DNA of 56,778 nucleotides, filler included, from Bipalium vagum (taxonomy: Eukaryota): NCBI GenBank assembly GCA_037834085.1. It is 3 parts of 3 records of this genome, joined end to end, with 100 filler letters (N's around TTAATTAATTAA, not from the genome) between each part and the next. Parts side by side here need not be neighbours in the genome. Positions count along the whole stretch, not along the records: positions 1 to 24,583 come from JBBMKC010199720.1; 2 more parts are not named here. One strand, written 5' to 3'. Numbering within the stretch: position 1 is the first letter of the stretch; each line of letters opens with the position of its first letter. The notes below the pieces were generated by a model. That model saw only the letters and a list, made by a program, of their open reading frames with translations, made no database searches and had not been told where the DNA came from. This document shows positions 1,200 to 24,583 of this stretch, piece after piece. A program made the position numbers and the translations under genes.

Positions 1200-2300
1200 A
1201 AAGTTTATCTCCACAGAGCATGATGTTGGCTGACATGATTGAAGCAGAGCAAAAGTTGCAGGTGGTACGTCTTCTCTATTGCTGTTGATAATTGCACTAA
1301 GATCGTTGTTTGATAAGCACTTTTCAATGTATGTATATTACATGGATCATCCTGGAAAAAGAGTTTGGCTAGATCTTCTGCATCTTCACGAATTGTATAT
1401 TGAGTGCTCTCAGCTTTTACTAGTAGTTTGCTTAAACACTGGTATTTTGTTAGCTGAATAAGTTCTCCAGCCAAACTGCTGTTTGATACAGATTGCTTTG
1501 CGCGAGAAATAAGTACTCCATTGTCTTCAAAACTTTCCACAATATGCCGAACAGTAGGCAAATATTGAGCATACCAGATACCTGCATTTAGTCACGTACC
1601 CCAACGTGTTAATACTGGCTGTGGCGGCTGACCTATAGCAGCAACCTGCAAACGAAAGGTGCCCACGAAGGCGCATTGCACAGTTATGCAGAAGGTGACA
1701 GACACATGTTACATGAAACAGTTGGTTATACATGTTCTTTAATATAGATCCGGTAAGAATCATATATTTTGCTGCATCAGTTATTAAAAGAACAAAGTTC
1801 TGTCTGTGTGTGCCAAGAAACCGAATCACATCGTCAACGTACTGGCATACTCTTGCACTATTAACGTTATTGGGTAAAGGAACACACTTGGGAACGGCAT
1901 GAAGACTCAGATGGACAATCATTTCCAAGGACTTTAAATAGTTTGACAACTGCTGGATGATTCAGTTTATATAGCGGAATATCAGACGCCATAAATGCTT
2001 TAGCTACTTCTGTTGTAAAACTACATCTTGATATTTCCAAAAATGATTGAGTAGAGCATACTGCCTTCTTATCATTGTGCTTCCCAAATTGACGGTGGCC
2101 CTCTTCAAATGACGCTTTTCTCGTTTTACAATGGTGTCGCACAAATTGCAGTACAGTTGATTTGTAGGGGTAGCAATAAATTCTGTCGGGTAATCAATAA
2201 CGATCCTGTTGACTTTGCATGATTGACTCGCTGCTATCTTTGGTATTGATGGAAATGATTTTTGATAGACGATTTTCATCAAGTTTTTCACACCAACAAA
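1200..2300 (-). mobile_element. Degenerate hAT-superfamily (CGGBP1/DUF659-like) transposase, frameshifted across several ORFs
   Basis: Overlapping minus-strand ORFs give PTEFIATPTNQLYCNLCDTIV (zinc-finger-like), FMASDIPLYKLNHPAVVKLF, LLITDAAKYM and HVTCVCHLLHNCA (hAT D..CxxH motif). TIRs not identified. Confidence 0.8.
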
Positions 2301-5174: not shown

Positions 5175-8100
5175 CTAGAAAATATAACTTGAATAAAAAT
5201 TAGAAAATCAATGAATACGAACGATAAAATTAATTATTGTTAGCATCATAAATCAATACAAGAAATAAGGATAAAACAAAAAAACAAACAGTAAATTATC
5301 GAAACATTGATTTTTATTTATTCTTCTTTCAATCAATTTGTTTGGGTATTTTAACTTTCTTTTTCTAGGAATTTTATTTAAAGATGGTAAAGTTATATCA
5401 TTTCTACTTTTGTTGCAACATTCATTTCACTTTTTATGTTCTTACGAGACCTATATCGTGTCACATATCTCTAACCGGACAACTATAACAGTTTTTTATC
5501 AAAAACAAGCCATGTGACAAATTTATAATTGTCATATTAAGCTGAGTAAATAAAAAATAAGTTTCAATCAAAAAACATACTGTACTTTTAATACGTTTTT
5601 GTGCAAGAAAACTATTCCTCTTTATTAATTGTATTAAGGAATTTTTAACCAGTTTTAATTTATTCAGAAATCCACAAAGCAATATTATTTAGTTTCGTTT
5701 TCATTTTAAAAACTTCTTTCAAATAATGATGATCCATACACACATTTCAATGCCACCCATTTGCATAAGACATAATTTGTTTGATAATTTATTGTACCAA
5801 AGGTATACACAGTGGCTTTATAAAGTATTCGTATATAGTATTCCACAGGTACCACATTAAAATTACCATCTTTTCTAAAACTATCCTTGATAGACATATA
5901 AACTTTTACATTACTAAAAAAAAGTATAATTTTACTAACAAAAAACTAAATTTATTAATGTTTATACTATACTCAAAATAAAGAAATATTTTACAATATT
6001 ATGAAGGAAAGGATTGATCAATATGATCAATACCTTGTTTCATATTCACTATTTTCAATAATATCTTGTATATTGGCATGGATTCAATCAAAATTTCGTA
6101 TATTGTGTTGATATATTACACTACTCTTTCTGAAAAGATCTACAAATCCATTTTAATTGGAATTTTGTTTTTTCAGCTTCTTATCGAATGGAAACCATAA
6201 ATTTTCAATTGAATTAAGGTCGGGCAATTGTAGAGGAATTGGAAACTTATTTTGTACATGATAAAGCATTCATTCCTTAACAATACTGGCAGTATCTTCG
6301 GATCGTTGTCTTGTTGAAATTTGAAGTCATTTTCAATATTCAATATTAAAGCATTTTTAAATAAATTATATGGTAAAATTCTTAAATAACATTTTGAATC
6401 CATAACCCTCTAATAAATAACAATTTCTTAATAATTTGTTATCTTTACTGCAGAACGAATACTTTATGGAGGCACGGTAAATAATTATATTGTATGATAG
6501 GCTATCAACAAAATTTTTTTAAAAAGGTGCAAAATTTAACATAAACTCAGTATCTAAAATCCTGATCTAAAATGATAGTATTAATTTTATCATAAAAACA
6601 TACATACAATAAAAATAATACCAACTTTAAAATGTAAATAATCTTATCGACCGGCATTTAAAATAATTGATTGATTTATTTAGAAATTATAACAGAAATA
6701 ACATAAAGAGATTAGTTTTTTGTCAATACTTTCTGAAGTGATGGATTTAAAAAACAGATAGAGAACTTTTACTAATTAACTTCTAAATAAAACATCACTT
6801 TTGAAGAATGGATATTATGATAATTCTCGTTGTTAAAAACCTTGTTATTCGATTATTATAAGAAAAGAAGTCTGTCAAACTAAACATTGACAGATTTCGT
6901 GAAAAGAAATTTCCAAAGACATCTGTACATATGAAATCTATCTCTAAATTTGGAAAATTTCTGCCACCGTCATTATCTAAATCAAGTAAGTTTTATTGTA
7001 TATTAAAAAATATTAATTTTAAACATAAAGATTTAAATATACTTTTTTAATATTTACTTAAACTGGACATAATTTTTCATAATAATCATTTAAATGATTC
7101 TCAATTATATTATACTGAAAACTATTTTTATTGTAATAGTGGATTGAAAAAATACCAAGTTTAATAATAATTATAAAGATTTTTAAATGAGCCAAAGAAA
7201 TTAACAAAATAAATATAATAAATAAAATTATCTATTTCCTGTTAAAATAACAAGGTTTATTACTATTAAATTTATTGGCTTTTATATTAAAAAATAAAGA
7301 TCCACAAATAACGTCTAGTCTAAGGTACCTAAGATATATCAGTTTATCTTATAACTATTACACAAATTATATTTCTATCAATTTTAATTAAAAATAATAT
7401 AAAATTGAAAATAATTACAGGAACATACTTTTAACTAATAAGAGAATACACTCTCTATTAATTTTCAAACATTAAGTGATCTTACTTATTCATATAAGGA
7501 ATTTAATGTATTTCCAAAAAGGGCATAAGTCAAAGAATGAAACAGAATAAGTGTTTATCCTTGAAATTTTATAAATTATGAATTTGCAAATGTACATTTT
7601 CATTTAATTCACAGACCAATGTATTTAACAAATCTGATTGAATTTACCAAAACTAAAGTCAAGTTAAGGAGATGTATTCTCACATAAGATCTTGAAACAA
7701 AAGATAGTTTTCAATAAAAAACGACAAGTTCGAAAGACAACATTTATTATTCTTTTCCAATTCGAATTTTATTTGGAAAAATGGAAATACAAATTGAAAA
7801 TAATATCCAATTTAATTTTTCGTGGAGGAAAAATATATTAAATAGAATACCAAAAAGAGTTCATTTTTATAGGACACTGAATGTTTATGACCACCAAGAA
7901 AAATGAAGCATGGATTGGTGCATACAAATATATCTGATGGAAGAAAATATTTTTCTTATTTCATAAAAATGGTAGCATAAAAGTATTTATTTAAATCAAA
8001 CATGTACTTTTACATCGATCATATTTTTCAGGTAAAGTTAAGTCTTCAATGAAATATTGAGATTTGTGTCCATACATTACTACATACATTTGCAAAACCT

Positions 8101-8600: not shown

Positions 8601-9115
8601 TGAGAAATGTATAAAATTAAAAAACAAATCCCGTTACAGGATATGCATAAGCGTTAATTCATAATAAAATAATATCTTCATTTCATATATAAACATAGAA
8701 CATTGATATTTTATTTAATTAAATATAATATTCTATTCCGATGTTTTTATAAAATACCTAAAATCTTCTAACTAATATTTCATAAATAACGTAATATCTT
8801 ACACCTGTACATATTTCCAGCAAATAAAACGTTGCCAAACCAATAATCAATAATTATCTTTTTAAAAAAATTAAATTTCATAATTTGTCTCCGAAAGAAT
8901 TTGTTTACATTAAATGCTCGTTTATTACAAAATTATATTTTTCTGCATCTTTGAACCTGATCTTCCTAACAGGTTTTCCAAATTTAAATTTAAAAATCTC
9001 TAATCATTTACCAGAAGACGAATATATACGAATTTTACCAATTAAAAACAACCTTCCTCAAAAATATCAAGAAATAAAATAAAAAATATGAAAATGATTG
9101 CAACAAAGTGTTCAC

Positions 9116-9338
9116 CGAAATTTTCTCAGAATCATTGGGTAGCTTTGACCAGTTCTGATTCCAAACGTTTCCAGTTGAACCGACTATTGAATTATTATGA
9201 TAGCATCCAGAAAAAATTGGACACAATAGTAGTCGTTTAGTAATGTCTTGACATATTTTTTTAAATTCAATGGCTTCCTGTTCTATCTGAATAATATTAT
9301 CAGGCCAGTTACAAGGTGCTTCCGTGTTCTTGTCATTT
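9116..9338 (-). CDS. Exon of ARHGAP17/44/SH3BP1-like N-BAR gene (NDKNTEAPCNWPDNIIQIEQEAIEFKKICQDITKRLLLC...)
   Basis: TTTGATAG acceptor, GTGAAC donor, 223 nt (phase 2 to 0), open frame. Aligns by eye to the RICH-family start 'RAEKTE...LLQIE...IC...KRL..C' and joins in frame to the KKLP exon. Confidence 0.8.
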
Positions 9339-9795
9339 CTATCAAATTTAAATAAGCAAAAATTTATTTGATCAAATGAAACAAATTTGTTATTAATTTA
9401 ATTAAAACTCTTAAAAATAAAAAAATAAACTTCAACAAGCTTAAAAAACTAAAACCTTAAAAATTTATTTAATATCATATGTTTCATCTCTTATTGAATA
9501 TATATCGGTTTAGAGTAAAAACCAAAACTAAAACTTAAATCGTAGCTTTTCAACATATAAACTAAATCAAATATTAAAACAATTAACATTGAACATAATA
9601 TTAATAAAACAATTTACAACTTTAATTAAAAAAGTCAAAAACATATATATTCAAAACACTAATAAATATTAAAATATTTCATAAACACTTAAATCCAATG
9701 TTCAATATTTTAAAAAATTTCATATAATTGCTTTCACCAGGACTTCGGAAAAAATAAAACAACAATTATTTATAAAAACAATTATTCAAAAAATT

Positions 9796-9801
9796 TTTAT
9801 T
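9796..9801 (-). terminator. Polyadenylation signal AATAAA of the 9823-10980 gene
   Basis: AATAAA about 22 nt after the stop codon on the minus strand. The AT-rich background lowers specificity. Confidence 0.45.
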
Positions 9802-9822
9802 AAAAGTACTCAATTCAAATTT

Positions 9823-10980
9823 TTAAAACACTTCAATATCCAAAGATCGTTTTCCCACTTTCTTTGCAGCTGTCGTTGGTTTCTTAGTTGTTGTACCCTT
9901 CTTCGCTGTTGTGGTTTTCTTTGTCGTCACACCTTTCAGTTCAAATTCATCTTCCAAATACAATTCATCACTCAATGANNNNNNNNNNNNNNNNNNNNNN
10001 NNNNNNNNNNNNNNNNNNNNNNNNNNNNNNNNNNNNNNNNNNNNNNNNNNNNNNNNNNNNNNNNNNNNNNNNNNNNNNTTCGCTGTTGTGGTTTTCTTTG
10101 TCGTCACACCTTTCAGTTCAAATTCATCTTCCAAATACAATTCATCACTCAATGATCGTTTTCCCACTTTCTTTGCAGGTGTACTTGATATTTTCGTTGA
10201 TACGAGTTTATTTGTTGTAGTTCCTTTCTTGGTCGTAAGAGCTTTTAGTTCTAATTCATTTTCGTAAAATAAATCTTCAAAATTTTTCCTGTTTACTCTT
10301 TTAGAATCGCTATTTATTTTCTTTTCATTTGCATATTTTTGTAAAACGTTTTCTACATAGTTTTTTACATTTTCTTCTTCATAAAAAGTTTTCGATGTTG
10401 CTAAATATTTCAAGCTTTCCGATTCAATTTTCTTTTCATTCACTTCAAATTCATTCTCATCAAATTTTTTGTCCCAATAGTTATTTTCAATTCCTGATTC
10501 GCAGAAGTCTTCATAGCGAGTGTATATTCGTTTACATTTGACATTAACTTTGTTATATTTCGTGGAACAATCTTTGTCCATCTTGCGATATTCTTTCGTA
10601 CAACCTCTGCTTAACGTTTTTGAGGATATTCGACAAACCTTATCTAATCTGTCAAGTTGTTTTCCACAATTTGCTGTGACATAACCATTGGTTTTTTCAC
10701 ACTCCTTTTTGATTTTCTTTCCTGCATCATTGCAACTTTCTTTTAGGGTCTTAAACATAGTACTGCATCGTTTGTCAATGTCTAGTGCAGTTTTGTCGCA
10801 GTATTCATCTATGGCTTGGTTGGCTTGGTCGCAGTTTTTTACTTGGGAAATTAGCTCGTTGCAGTGTAATCTTTGCTTTTTGTTCAGTAACAGAGTCTCC
10901 TCCTGTTTGACCACCAAGTCTCCAATTTCGCAATCAATTAATTGTAATCCTATATTAATGATTAAGAATATAATTATCAT
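9823..10980 (-). CDS. Secreted precursor: signal peptide + 12-Cys hendecad (CX10C) helical domain + repeated acidic / Lys-Thr-rich cassettes ending in GKR
   Basis: Longest ORF in the window. Hydrophobic N-terminus MIIIFLIINIGLQLIDC. Cys at residues 40,50,61,72...160. 44-aa C-terminal repeats spanning an assembly gap (9979-10078). TATA box upstream and polyA signal downstream. Confidence 0.85.
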   Translation of the reverse strand: MIIIFLIINIGLQLIDCEIGDLVVKQEETLLLNKKQRLHCNELISQVKNCDQANQAIDEYCDKTALDIDKRCSTMFKTLKESCNDAGKKIKKECEKTNGYVTANCGKQLDRLDKVCRISSKTLSRGCTKEYRKMDKDCSTKYNKVNVKCKRIYTRYEDFCESGIENNYWDKKFDENEFEVNEKKIESESLKYLATSKTFYEEENVKNYVENVLQKYANEKKINSDSKRVNRKNFEDLFYENELELKALTTKKGTTTNKLVSTKISSTPAKKVGKRSLSDELYLEDEFELKGVTTKKTTTAXXXXXXXXXXXXXXXXXXXXXXXXXXXXXXXXXXSLSDELYLEDEFELKGVTTKKTTTAKKGTTTKKPTTAAKKVGKRSLDIEVF

Positions 10981-11004: not shown

Positions 11005-11035
11005 AAACTATCTTAGGTTCTGCTGATATTATATA
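11005..11035 (-). promoter_or_regulatory. Putative core promoter (TATATAA at 11035-11029 and Inr-like TAGTTT at 11010-11005) of the secreted gene
   Basis: TATA lies about 26 nt upstream of an Inr-like motif, itself about 25-30 nt upstream of the ATG at 10980, which has an AAAA context. Confidence 0.5.
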
Positions 11036-23907: not shown

Positions 23908-24583
23908 TCAAAAACATGAATTCATGCGATCCGGACACCTTATGAGAATTTCGGTGCCATCTTCTTTTATAGCGCCCCAAACCATTAAACTCTTGCCACT
24001 GAATTTTACAGTTTTTGTTATATATTTGGGACTATATCTGAATCCTTGTGGTCTGCGAACGTATTCTCTTCTTCTGGAACATAATTCTAGCCTACATTCG
24101 TCTGTAAAAATGACCTCATTCCAAAAAGAAGGAAGTAATTTGCCATACTCTCTGCACCACTTTAAGCGATTCTTGATGTGCCGCTCATTCAACAGCGGTT
24201 TCTTTGCTGCAATCCGTCCAAATAACCCATACTTCCTAAGAACACGTTTCACAGTACTTACTGAAGAAGTTTGACTTCCTTCCAATTCAAGCAATAGCTG
24301 ACGTGCTGTTTTCTTGGGATGTTCCTTTGACATACGAATTAGCCATCTTTCAGATCTTGCTGTATTTTTTGGCTTTTTATATATCTTCCAATGTTTTATG
24401 TTGTTGCAACTTAAGTTGGATACGTTGCACTGCATGCCGTGATAAATTAAGCATATTTAAAATTTTTCTTTGTGAACAACCGTCTTTCAATTTTTGAATT
24501 ACTAAGATTCTCAAATCCATCGACAACCGAGTCATATTTAACCAAAATATTTCTAAAAATATATTAGATAACAATGTGTAAAA
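23908..24583 (-). mobile_element. Tc1-like transposase, 5' two-thirds, frameshifted
   Basis: MTRLSMDLRILVIQKLKDGCSQRKI (HTH), GRIAAKKPLL, WNEVIFTDECR, SLMVWGAI motifs. Truncated before the catalytic E. Confidence 0.9.

Follow-up and report, generated by a model that had tools for sequence, protein, structure and literature searches.

What kind of protein, and what fold, could account for twelve cysteines that follow one another at near-strict intervals of eleven residues? The question is raised by an open reading frame (ORF) of the planarian Bipalium vagum (assembly GCA_037834085.1), located at 9823-10980 on the minus strand of a stretch of 56,778 nucleotides (26% G+C) made of three joined parts of that genome, the first of which (positions 1 to 24,583) comes from JBBMKC010199720.1; this whole stretch is referred to here as the window. 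Our best explanation, which we consider likely as a whole, is that the window carries an intact, intronless planarian gene for a protein that would be secreted, that the cysteine (Cys) ladder would fold as an antiparallel hendecad helical hairpin and not as one rod of 120 residues, and that this ladder module defines a family of at least 40 genes, with 4, 5 or 6 rungs, sometimes arranged in tandem and often in opposed pairs. The window protein would be an extended variant of the known disulfide-stapled helical hairpin, and it probably provides a structural identity for a well-known planarian gene family, that of the PROG proteins.

The ORF is the longest over the Cys ladder and consists of a single exon, stop codon included, encoding at least 385 amino acids; this is its length as assembled, with a gap of 100 N (9979-10078) falling within the C-terminal repeat region. 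Its parts, described with the help of AlphaFold2 (AF2) models and their predicted local distance difference test (pLDDT) values, are as follows:

9823-10980, minus strand: the ORF, supported by its translation and by the proportions of non-synonymous (pN 0.22-0.29) and synonymous (pS ~0.9) sites that differ between paralogues.
11029-11035, minus strand: TATATAA box, 55 nucleotides upstream of the ATG, read from the sequence; putative promoter element.
10930-10980, minus strand: residues 1-17, signal-peptide-like hydrophobic start (translation and paralogue alignment).
10864-10929, minus strand: residues 18-39, N-terminal extension of helix 1, beginning with an EIGDL motif that the alignment shows to be common to close paralogues (AF2 helix from residue 19, pLDDT 56-77).
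10699-10863, minus strand: residues 40-94, ladder helix 1, with Cys 40/50/61/72/83/94 (AF2 pLDDT 91-98).
10669-10698, minus strand: residues 95-104, central interval with the predicted hairpin turn (AF2 loop G99-Y-V-T102).
10501-10668, minus strand: residues 105-160, ladder helix 2, with Cys 105/116/127/138/149/160 (translation, spacing and AF2).
10195-10500, minus strand: residues 161-262, acidic and aromatic linker (AF2 confidence low beyond residue 166).
9826-10194, minus strand: residues 263-385, in which acidic units alternate with Thr/Lys-rich, mucin-like ones (translation).
9796-9801, minus strand: AATAAA, 22 nucleotides past the stop codon, read from the sequence; putative polyadenylation signal.

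The Cys lie at residues 17, 40, 50, 61, 72, 83, 94, 105, 116, 127, 138, 149 and 160, with spacings of 23, 10 and then 11 ten times, so that the ladder comprises one CX9C and ten CX10C. The thirteenth Cys, at residue 17, had been overlooked in the initial annotation of this locus. Since paralogues carry Ser, Ala or Gly (small residues suited to the -1 site) as well as Cys at the same position, Cys17 probably occupies the -1 site of signal-peptidase cleavage and would be removed with the signal peptide. The twelve ladder positions had been correctly noted, the interval 10501-10863 corresponding exactly to residues 40-160, and translation also bears out that the residue at C+7 is hydrophobic in all ten CX10C units (I, I, L, I, V, L, L, M, V and Y) and that proline is absent from residues 40-160. 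Chance can be excluded for the ladder, because 10 CX10C pairs are observed and none of 200,000 shuffled versions of residues 18-175 had more than 5. Tandem Repeats Finder found no 33-nucleotide DNA repeat in 10501-10863, and the periodicity therefore belongs to the protein and not to the DNA. From 271 distinct CX10C units we derived the consensus C-D-x-x-[YF]-x-x-[LIV]-D-x-x, in which hydrophobic residues account for 78% of C+4, 84% of C+7 and 40% of C+3, Asp for 34% of C+1 and 38% of C+8, and Pro and Gly for ~0-4% at most positions inside the units. Eleven residues correspond to three helical turns; with Cys as hendecad position a, the core is formed by a, d (C+3), e (C+4, Tyr/Phe) and h (C+7, Leu/Ile/Val).

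The window gene is not alone in its genome. With residues 1-165 as query, 31 matches were obtained in the 440-Mb assembly; a 15-sequence profile raised the number to 58, with E values down to 2e-46. They represent at least 40 paralogous loci, nearly all of them uninterrupted frames with the Cys spacing of the ladder, which are only 16-65% identical to the window protein; that spacing is kept while sequence diverges had been proposed from the single gene, and holds for the family. The strong matches are all open frames with hydrophobic N-termini, and every member with a start codon has an N-terminus that is hydrophobic and looks cleavable. Most members have 116-250 amino acids, compared with at least 385 in the window protein, and Lys makes up 7-17% of their residues (9-17% in all but one; 15.3% in the window protein). 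Three Cys columns of the family alignment (A2) are invariant, and four more Cys, together with the Asp after the second ladder Cys, are nearly so. The window gene and its closest paralogues differ at ~90% of synonymous sites and at 22-29% of non-synonymous ones, and the ratio of non-synonymous to synonymous substitution rates (dN/dS) in a young, small tandem subfamily is 0.15-0.26; as judged from these comparisons, the family is under purifying selection. Small members occur in pairs 1.6-5 kb apart at three loci, in opposed orientation at L050 (3726-4097, minus, and 6518-6892, plus) and L052 (476-934, minus, and 2559-2918, plus), with a further pair at L053 (2521-3318, plus, and 8696-9844, minus); no partner was found beside the window gene within its 24.5 kb. 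Could the locus nevertheless be no gene at all, that is, a chance ORF or an 11-codon tandem DNA repeat in translation? In the large protein search described below, some 55 of 72 hits are indeed translated perfect 33-nucleotide repeats, but the lack of such a repeat here, where the units are divergent, the excess of synonymous over non-synonymous differences among paralogues, and a predicted signal peptide, a TATA box and an AATAAA that are all in place refute this reading, to which we give practically no credence.

How would the ladder be folded? Leaving the signal peptide aside, the Cys spacing is mirror-symmetric about one short central interval in every subfamily:

6+6 form: 10,11,11,11,11, then a central interval of 7-11, then 11,11,11,11,11 (the window gene and ~12 others).
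5+5 form: 11,11,11,11, then 8, then 11,11,11,10.
4+4 form: 11,11,11, then 8-9, then 11,11,11 (the small tandem subfamily).

Mirrored Cys are lost jointly in diverged members, giving 11,11,22 / 8 / 22,11,11 as well as 11,22,11 / 8 / 11,22,11 and 22,22 / 11 / 22,22. The central interval alone varies in length (7-11 residues) and often contains Gly, Pro or Thr, CRSKPRSC and CGNPKPVC being examples with Pro or Gly. Two members were modelled with AF2, using the family alignment. The mature window protein (mean pLDDT 87.8, predicted TM-score 0.70) is predicted to form helices at 2-81 and 86-149 of the mature chain, that is, protein residues 19-98 and 103-166, joined by the loop G99-Y-V-T102, whose four residues coincide with the middle of the palindrome; in a 4+4 paralogue (pLDDT 85.8) the helices span 7-42 and 48-84, and the loop, of 4-5 residues over the two models, again separates the innermost pair of Cys. 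The monomer prediction that the initial annotation had proposed as a check thus returned a helical fold with pLDDT 86-88 in two members and, together with the unit statistics (Cys at position a in 100% of units, an 11-residue period, all-helix models in both cases), it supports the idea of a helical hendecad disulfide ladder. Two geometries had been offered for that ladder, and they fare differently: we favour the helical hairpin because the spacing is palindromic, mirrored Cys are lost jointly and AF2 places a loop at the centre, and the same evidence disfavours a single 120-residue rod zipped between chains. By symmetry, the rungs would be the disulfides 94-105, 83-116, 72-127, 61-138, 50-149 and 40-160; the residue numbers of each proposed pair sum to 199 or 200, and its two members would thus stand at equal height. 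The hairpin seems to serve as a common N-terminal module for varied repeat tails.

The tail of the window protein deserves separate consideration. Its units end in ...KKVGKR/SL..., an ending that the ORF as assembled contains twice; Gly-Lys-Arg is a classical signal for dibasic cleavage and amidation. The repeat unit has ~132 nucleotides, and in the source DNA run a 162-nucleotide contig over 9845-9976 is found at a word depth of ~1428, compared with ~20 for the unique flanks. Given this ~70-fold depth, the unit must be present about 70 times in the genome, with the array collapsed at the N gap 9979-10078; the actual protein may therefore far exceed its assembled length, or other genes may contain the unit as well. 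The only run that holds the full gene (X1) covers gene and flanks at an even depth of ~20, and is therefore DNA, probably the source of the assembly. Three further runs (X2-X4), which carry the labels of other organisms, contain nothing of the gene but the 162-nucleotide piece, at a depth of ~5. The Thr/Lys-rich array is probably O-glycosylated. Among the paralogues, L035 and L036 (G000:C65653) and L038 (G000:C194233) have quite different tails of low complexity after the hairpin, among which FDKDGKFKY/NFTNGDFWKY repeats and Asn/Asp/His-rich stretches occur.

Outside the genome, relatives are few. The 72 hits mentioned above come from a profile search against 1.84 billion representative proteins. 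About 16 of them are genuine, with a signal peptide and divergent units; these are 42-60% identical to their best paralogue in the genome of the window. The only two with names are from Schmidtea mediterranea, P0003 (AFJ24740.1, 'hypothetical protein') and P0014 (AHD24757.1, 'X1.D.D8.3'), at most 53% identical to paralogues in the genome of the window, and a literature search on the GenBank/UniProt accessions of the relatives and on 'X1.D.D8.3' found nothing. P0001 (locus L054, SRR33002330), from a related flatworm with ~40% G+C, is a protein of 378 amino acids in which four hairpin modules with 8 Cys each follow one another in tandem, Pro, Ala and Gly being abundant in the 16-residue stretches between them. 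The SRR33002330 contigs L049 and L054 were considered as transcripts and set aside, as they have no poly-A and a TATA-like box lies upstream in L054; they are not countable. Two distant sequences present only in UniParc, P0041 and P0057, keep only every second rung (22,22 / 11 / 22,22), and given these the family may reach beyond the sampled triclads. Word-index protein searches with the window protein, a small paralogue and A2 gave no hit although relatives exist, and such searches are insensitive for this family; a search of the ESM Atlas gave no usable hit and no model.

Which planarian proteins could these be? The best candidates are the products of the prog genes (Eisenhoffer 2008). PROG-1/PROG-2 ('prog', 'pmp'; NB.21.11e and NB.32.1g in S. 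mediterranea) are a secreted family of epidermal progenitors, which pack these proteins into secretory granules and discharge them at the body surface; their genes serve as markers (Zhu 2015, PMC4507787; Almazan 2017, PMC5750089; Cheng 2017, bioRxiv 10.1101/179986). They comprise at least 24 very divergent members, with an average of 179 amino acids, a signal sequence as the sole detected feature and no homologue in other flatworms (PMC4507787); they are rich in Lys (10-19%), with a handful of Cys and Asp positions that are near-completely conserved (PMC5750089); and a signal peptide, internal repeats and a coiled coil (by SMART), genes in opposed pairs or arrays in S. mediterranea, and the location of PROG-2-5 in the epidermal secretory 'Hyman vesicles' have been described (bioRxiv 10.1101/179986). 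The family of the window gene shares with them the planarian restriction, since S. mediterranea supplies its only named genuine relatives among the 1.84 billion representatives, as well as divergent paralogues, a hydrophobic, signal-like N-terminus, a size of ~120-250 amino acids for most members, Lys richness (7-17%), near-invariant Cys and Asp columns, and opposed pairs or arrays. No domain, Cys periodicity or fold is reported for PROG in these papers (PMC4507787, PMC5750089, 10.1101/179986), and no structural study of PROG proteins came up in a literature search. By this analogy of descriptions, we think it fairly probable that the window family is PROG-1/PROG-2 or a superfamily around PROG. 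The statement in the initial annotation that this is not a named domain is consequently correct with regard to Pfam and the PDB, but needs amending in that the family very probably equals or includes proteins already described as marker genes.

With these elements, the following model can be proposed. The signal peptide would be cleaved after Cys17, at -1, and residues 19-166 would fold as one long antiparallel two-helix hairpin, with helices of ~60-80 residues and six Cys on each, one per 11 residues. All the Cys would line the interface with the aromatic residues at C+4 and the aliphatic ones at C+7 (hendecad a, e and h), and in the oxidising endoplasmic reticulum (ER) six rung disulfides would staple the helices into a rigid, very stable rod ~80 Angstrom long. 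Cells of the epidermal lineage would load this rod, followed by the acidic linker and the Thr/Lys-rich array, into secretory granules and release it as a surface or mucus material with a structural or protective function. The protein is probably a cargo of epidermal granules or mucus that serves for structure or protection.

Several observations weigh against this interpretation, and the alternatives need to be considered with them. The pairing of the Cys is inferred from symmetry, and an antiparallel homodimer of continuous helices would equally require, and fit, palindromic spacing. Such an arrangement, in which one continuous helix of ~120 residues would pair with a second chain through an intermolecular ladder to give a covalent dimer or polymer, was the first option of the initial annotation; ladders between chains would be well suited to a polymer that has a structural role or is part of mucus, and in the window gene's own subfamily, where the central interval is of 11 residues, the 11-residue period runs across it without a visible break. 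The mirror rule also has exceptions, with one shifted Cys in L002, a one-sided Cys loss in P0015 and extra Cys in L007 and P0003. However, the central interval in most subfamilies is of 7-9 residues, which is off the helical period, and in several it contains Pro or Gly; AF2 breaks the helix at the centre with high confidence in two different members; and P0001 carries four self-contained 8-Cys modules in a single chain. A ladder between chains is, in our judgement, improbable, and the intramolecular hairpin is the geometry that we retain. As for the gene itself, no RNA run holding it was found among the sequencing runs, its sole holder being the DNA source of the assembly, and no orthologue of the window protein's own subfamily was found outside its genome.

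The hairpin could also be something other than the final product. As a carrier or sorting prodomain, an idea already raised for this locus, it would be followed by a tail that is cut at Gly-Lys-Arg into amidated, Thr/Lys-rich peptides of ~42 residues. The two sites that flank the tail repeat unit, and the ~70 copies of that unit by contig depth, lend this some weak support, and PROG-2-5 is reported in precursor and mature forms, though these are ascribed in that work to removal of the signal peptide (10.1101/179986). Against this, the close paralogues have unrelated tails that lack Gly-Lys-Arg (L003 has basic pairs, and L002 and L004 are without such repeats), most family members are tailless, K-R pairs are expected by chance at 15% Lys, and selection conserves the ladder and not the tail, so a precursor of this kind has little to recommend it. 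Some points also count against the PROG assignment, which is based on matching descriptions: the two S. mediterranea relatives with names are listed as 'hypothetical protein' and 'X1.D.D8.3' and not as PROG, and the window protein, with at least 385 amino acids and a mucin-like repeat tail, is longer than the typical PROG proteins of 13-17 kDa. A separate planarian family of secreted Cys-repeat proteins, similar to PROG in general features only and made for example in rhabdite, adhesive-gland, pharynx or parenchymal gland cells, would account for these points. Yet all the published PROG descriptors are matched (restriction, signal peptide, size, Lys, Cys/Asp, repeats with coiled coil, opposed pairs), and we regard a distinct family as unlikely, although it deserves to be kept in mind. 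The preferred reading is still that of a stapled hairpin belonging to PROG or its kin.

In planarian stem-cell biology, few markers are used as widely as the prog genes, yet PMC4507787, PMC5750089 and 10.1101/179986 report no domain, fold or function for their products. We tentatively suggest, at somewhat less than an even chance, that the family represents an undescribed class of extracellular fold, a helical hairpin of modular length with a disulfide every third turn and 4-6 rungs, at times with several hairpins in tandem, which would be the structural identity of PROG and its kin and a building block of granules and surface coat. If the family is PROG or its kin, a rod stapled by oxidation, and resistant to proteases and heat, would make the role in epidermal granules or mucus testable, and would provide the first testable hypothesis for PROG, namely that these abundant marker proteins are hyperstable rods of a protective or adhesive surface layer. 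If the ladder were intermolecular instead, it would constitute a covalent polymer-forming system of relevance to mucus or adhesive biology.

The window, which is eukaryotic sequence of animal type, contains two further features, both related to transposons. At 23908-24435 (minus strand), a 175-residue ORF has the helix-turn-helix of Tc3-type transposases (PF01498, E 4.4e-18) and is a Tc1/mariner remnant. At 1205-2291 (minus strand), overlapping ORFs in different frames, with 34-37% G+C and one sub-threshold match to DUF659 (hAT-associated, E 1e-5), look like a decayed transposon of hAT type.

How does the proposed hairpin relate to known systems? In a Pfam scan, neither the window protein nor any of the 41 aligned members had a match over threshold. 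The 'Colipase-like' matches in 11 of the 41 (best E 1.8e-5; 12-15 bits for the window protein against a cutoff of 27) were judged to be noise from Cys spacing, as were the sub-threshold ones to EGF_TEN, COX6B (8.5-10.7 bits against a cutoff of 26, E 0.6-2.9) and CMC4 (E 0.04 in two of the 41). In sequence searches of the PDB, neither the single protein nor the profile found a match with E under 0.17, and the rows for influenza HA2 are coiled-coil noise. Foldseek (best E 0.25) and VIA-align (Z 9-11, which for long helices is below the informative level) find nothing more specific than long antiparallel hairpins of the coiled-coil kind, namely p85 iSH2, the SMC arms, the PLC-beta C-terminal domain and YscO.

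Three groups of proteins nevertheless invite comparison: (i) The CHCH proteins (twin CX9C; COX17, COX6B, CMC4; substrates of Mia40) are also antiparallel hairpins with interhelix disulfides and Cys 10-11 residues apart, and the outermost rung of the window protein would be a CX9C opposite a CX10C, as in proteins of the COX6B type. In contrast to the window family, with its 4-6 rungs, strict hendecad period and signal-peptide-like start for the ER, CHCH proteins have two rungs and no signal peptide, and are oxidised by Mia40 in the mitochondrial intermembrane space. The mirrored helix-loop-helix is common to both, but the Pfam gathering score is not reached and the window family does not share the lack of a signal peptide; the resemblance is an analogy and not a demonstrated homology. 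(ii) Plant alpha-hairpinins and scorpion kappa-hefutoxins are secreted two-helix hairpins with interhelix disulfides, as proposed here for the window family. They have 30-40 residues, two rungs and CX3C spacing, whereas the hairpin of the window protein would have 120-150 residues, six rungs and CX10C spacing. (iii) Hendecad coiled coils and long antiparallel hairpins share the 11-residue period and the a-d-e-h core, and are the closest structural matches to our model; p85 iSH2, the SMC arms, the PLC-beta C-terminal domain and YscO, however, have no disulfide ladder and are 3-16% identical, so that the arrangement alone is shared. The six-rung ladder would thus extend the two-rung principle of CHCH proteins and alpha-hairpinins to a rod of ~80 Angstrom, the length of which has been varied in evolution by whole rungs, and which could for that reason serve as a scaffold for hyperstable designed rods.

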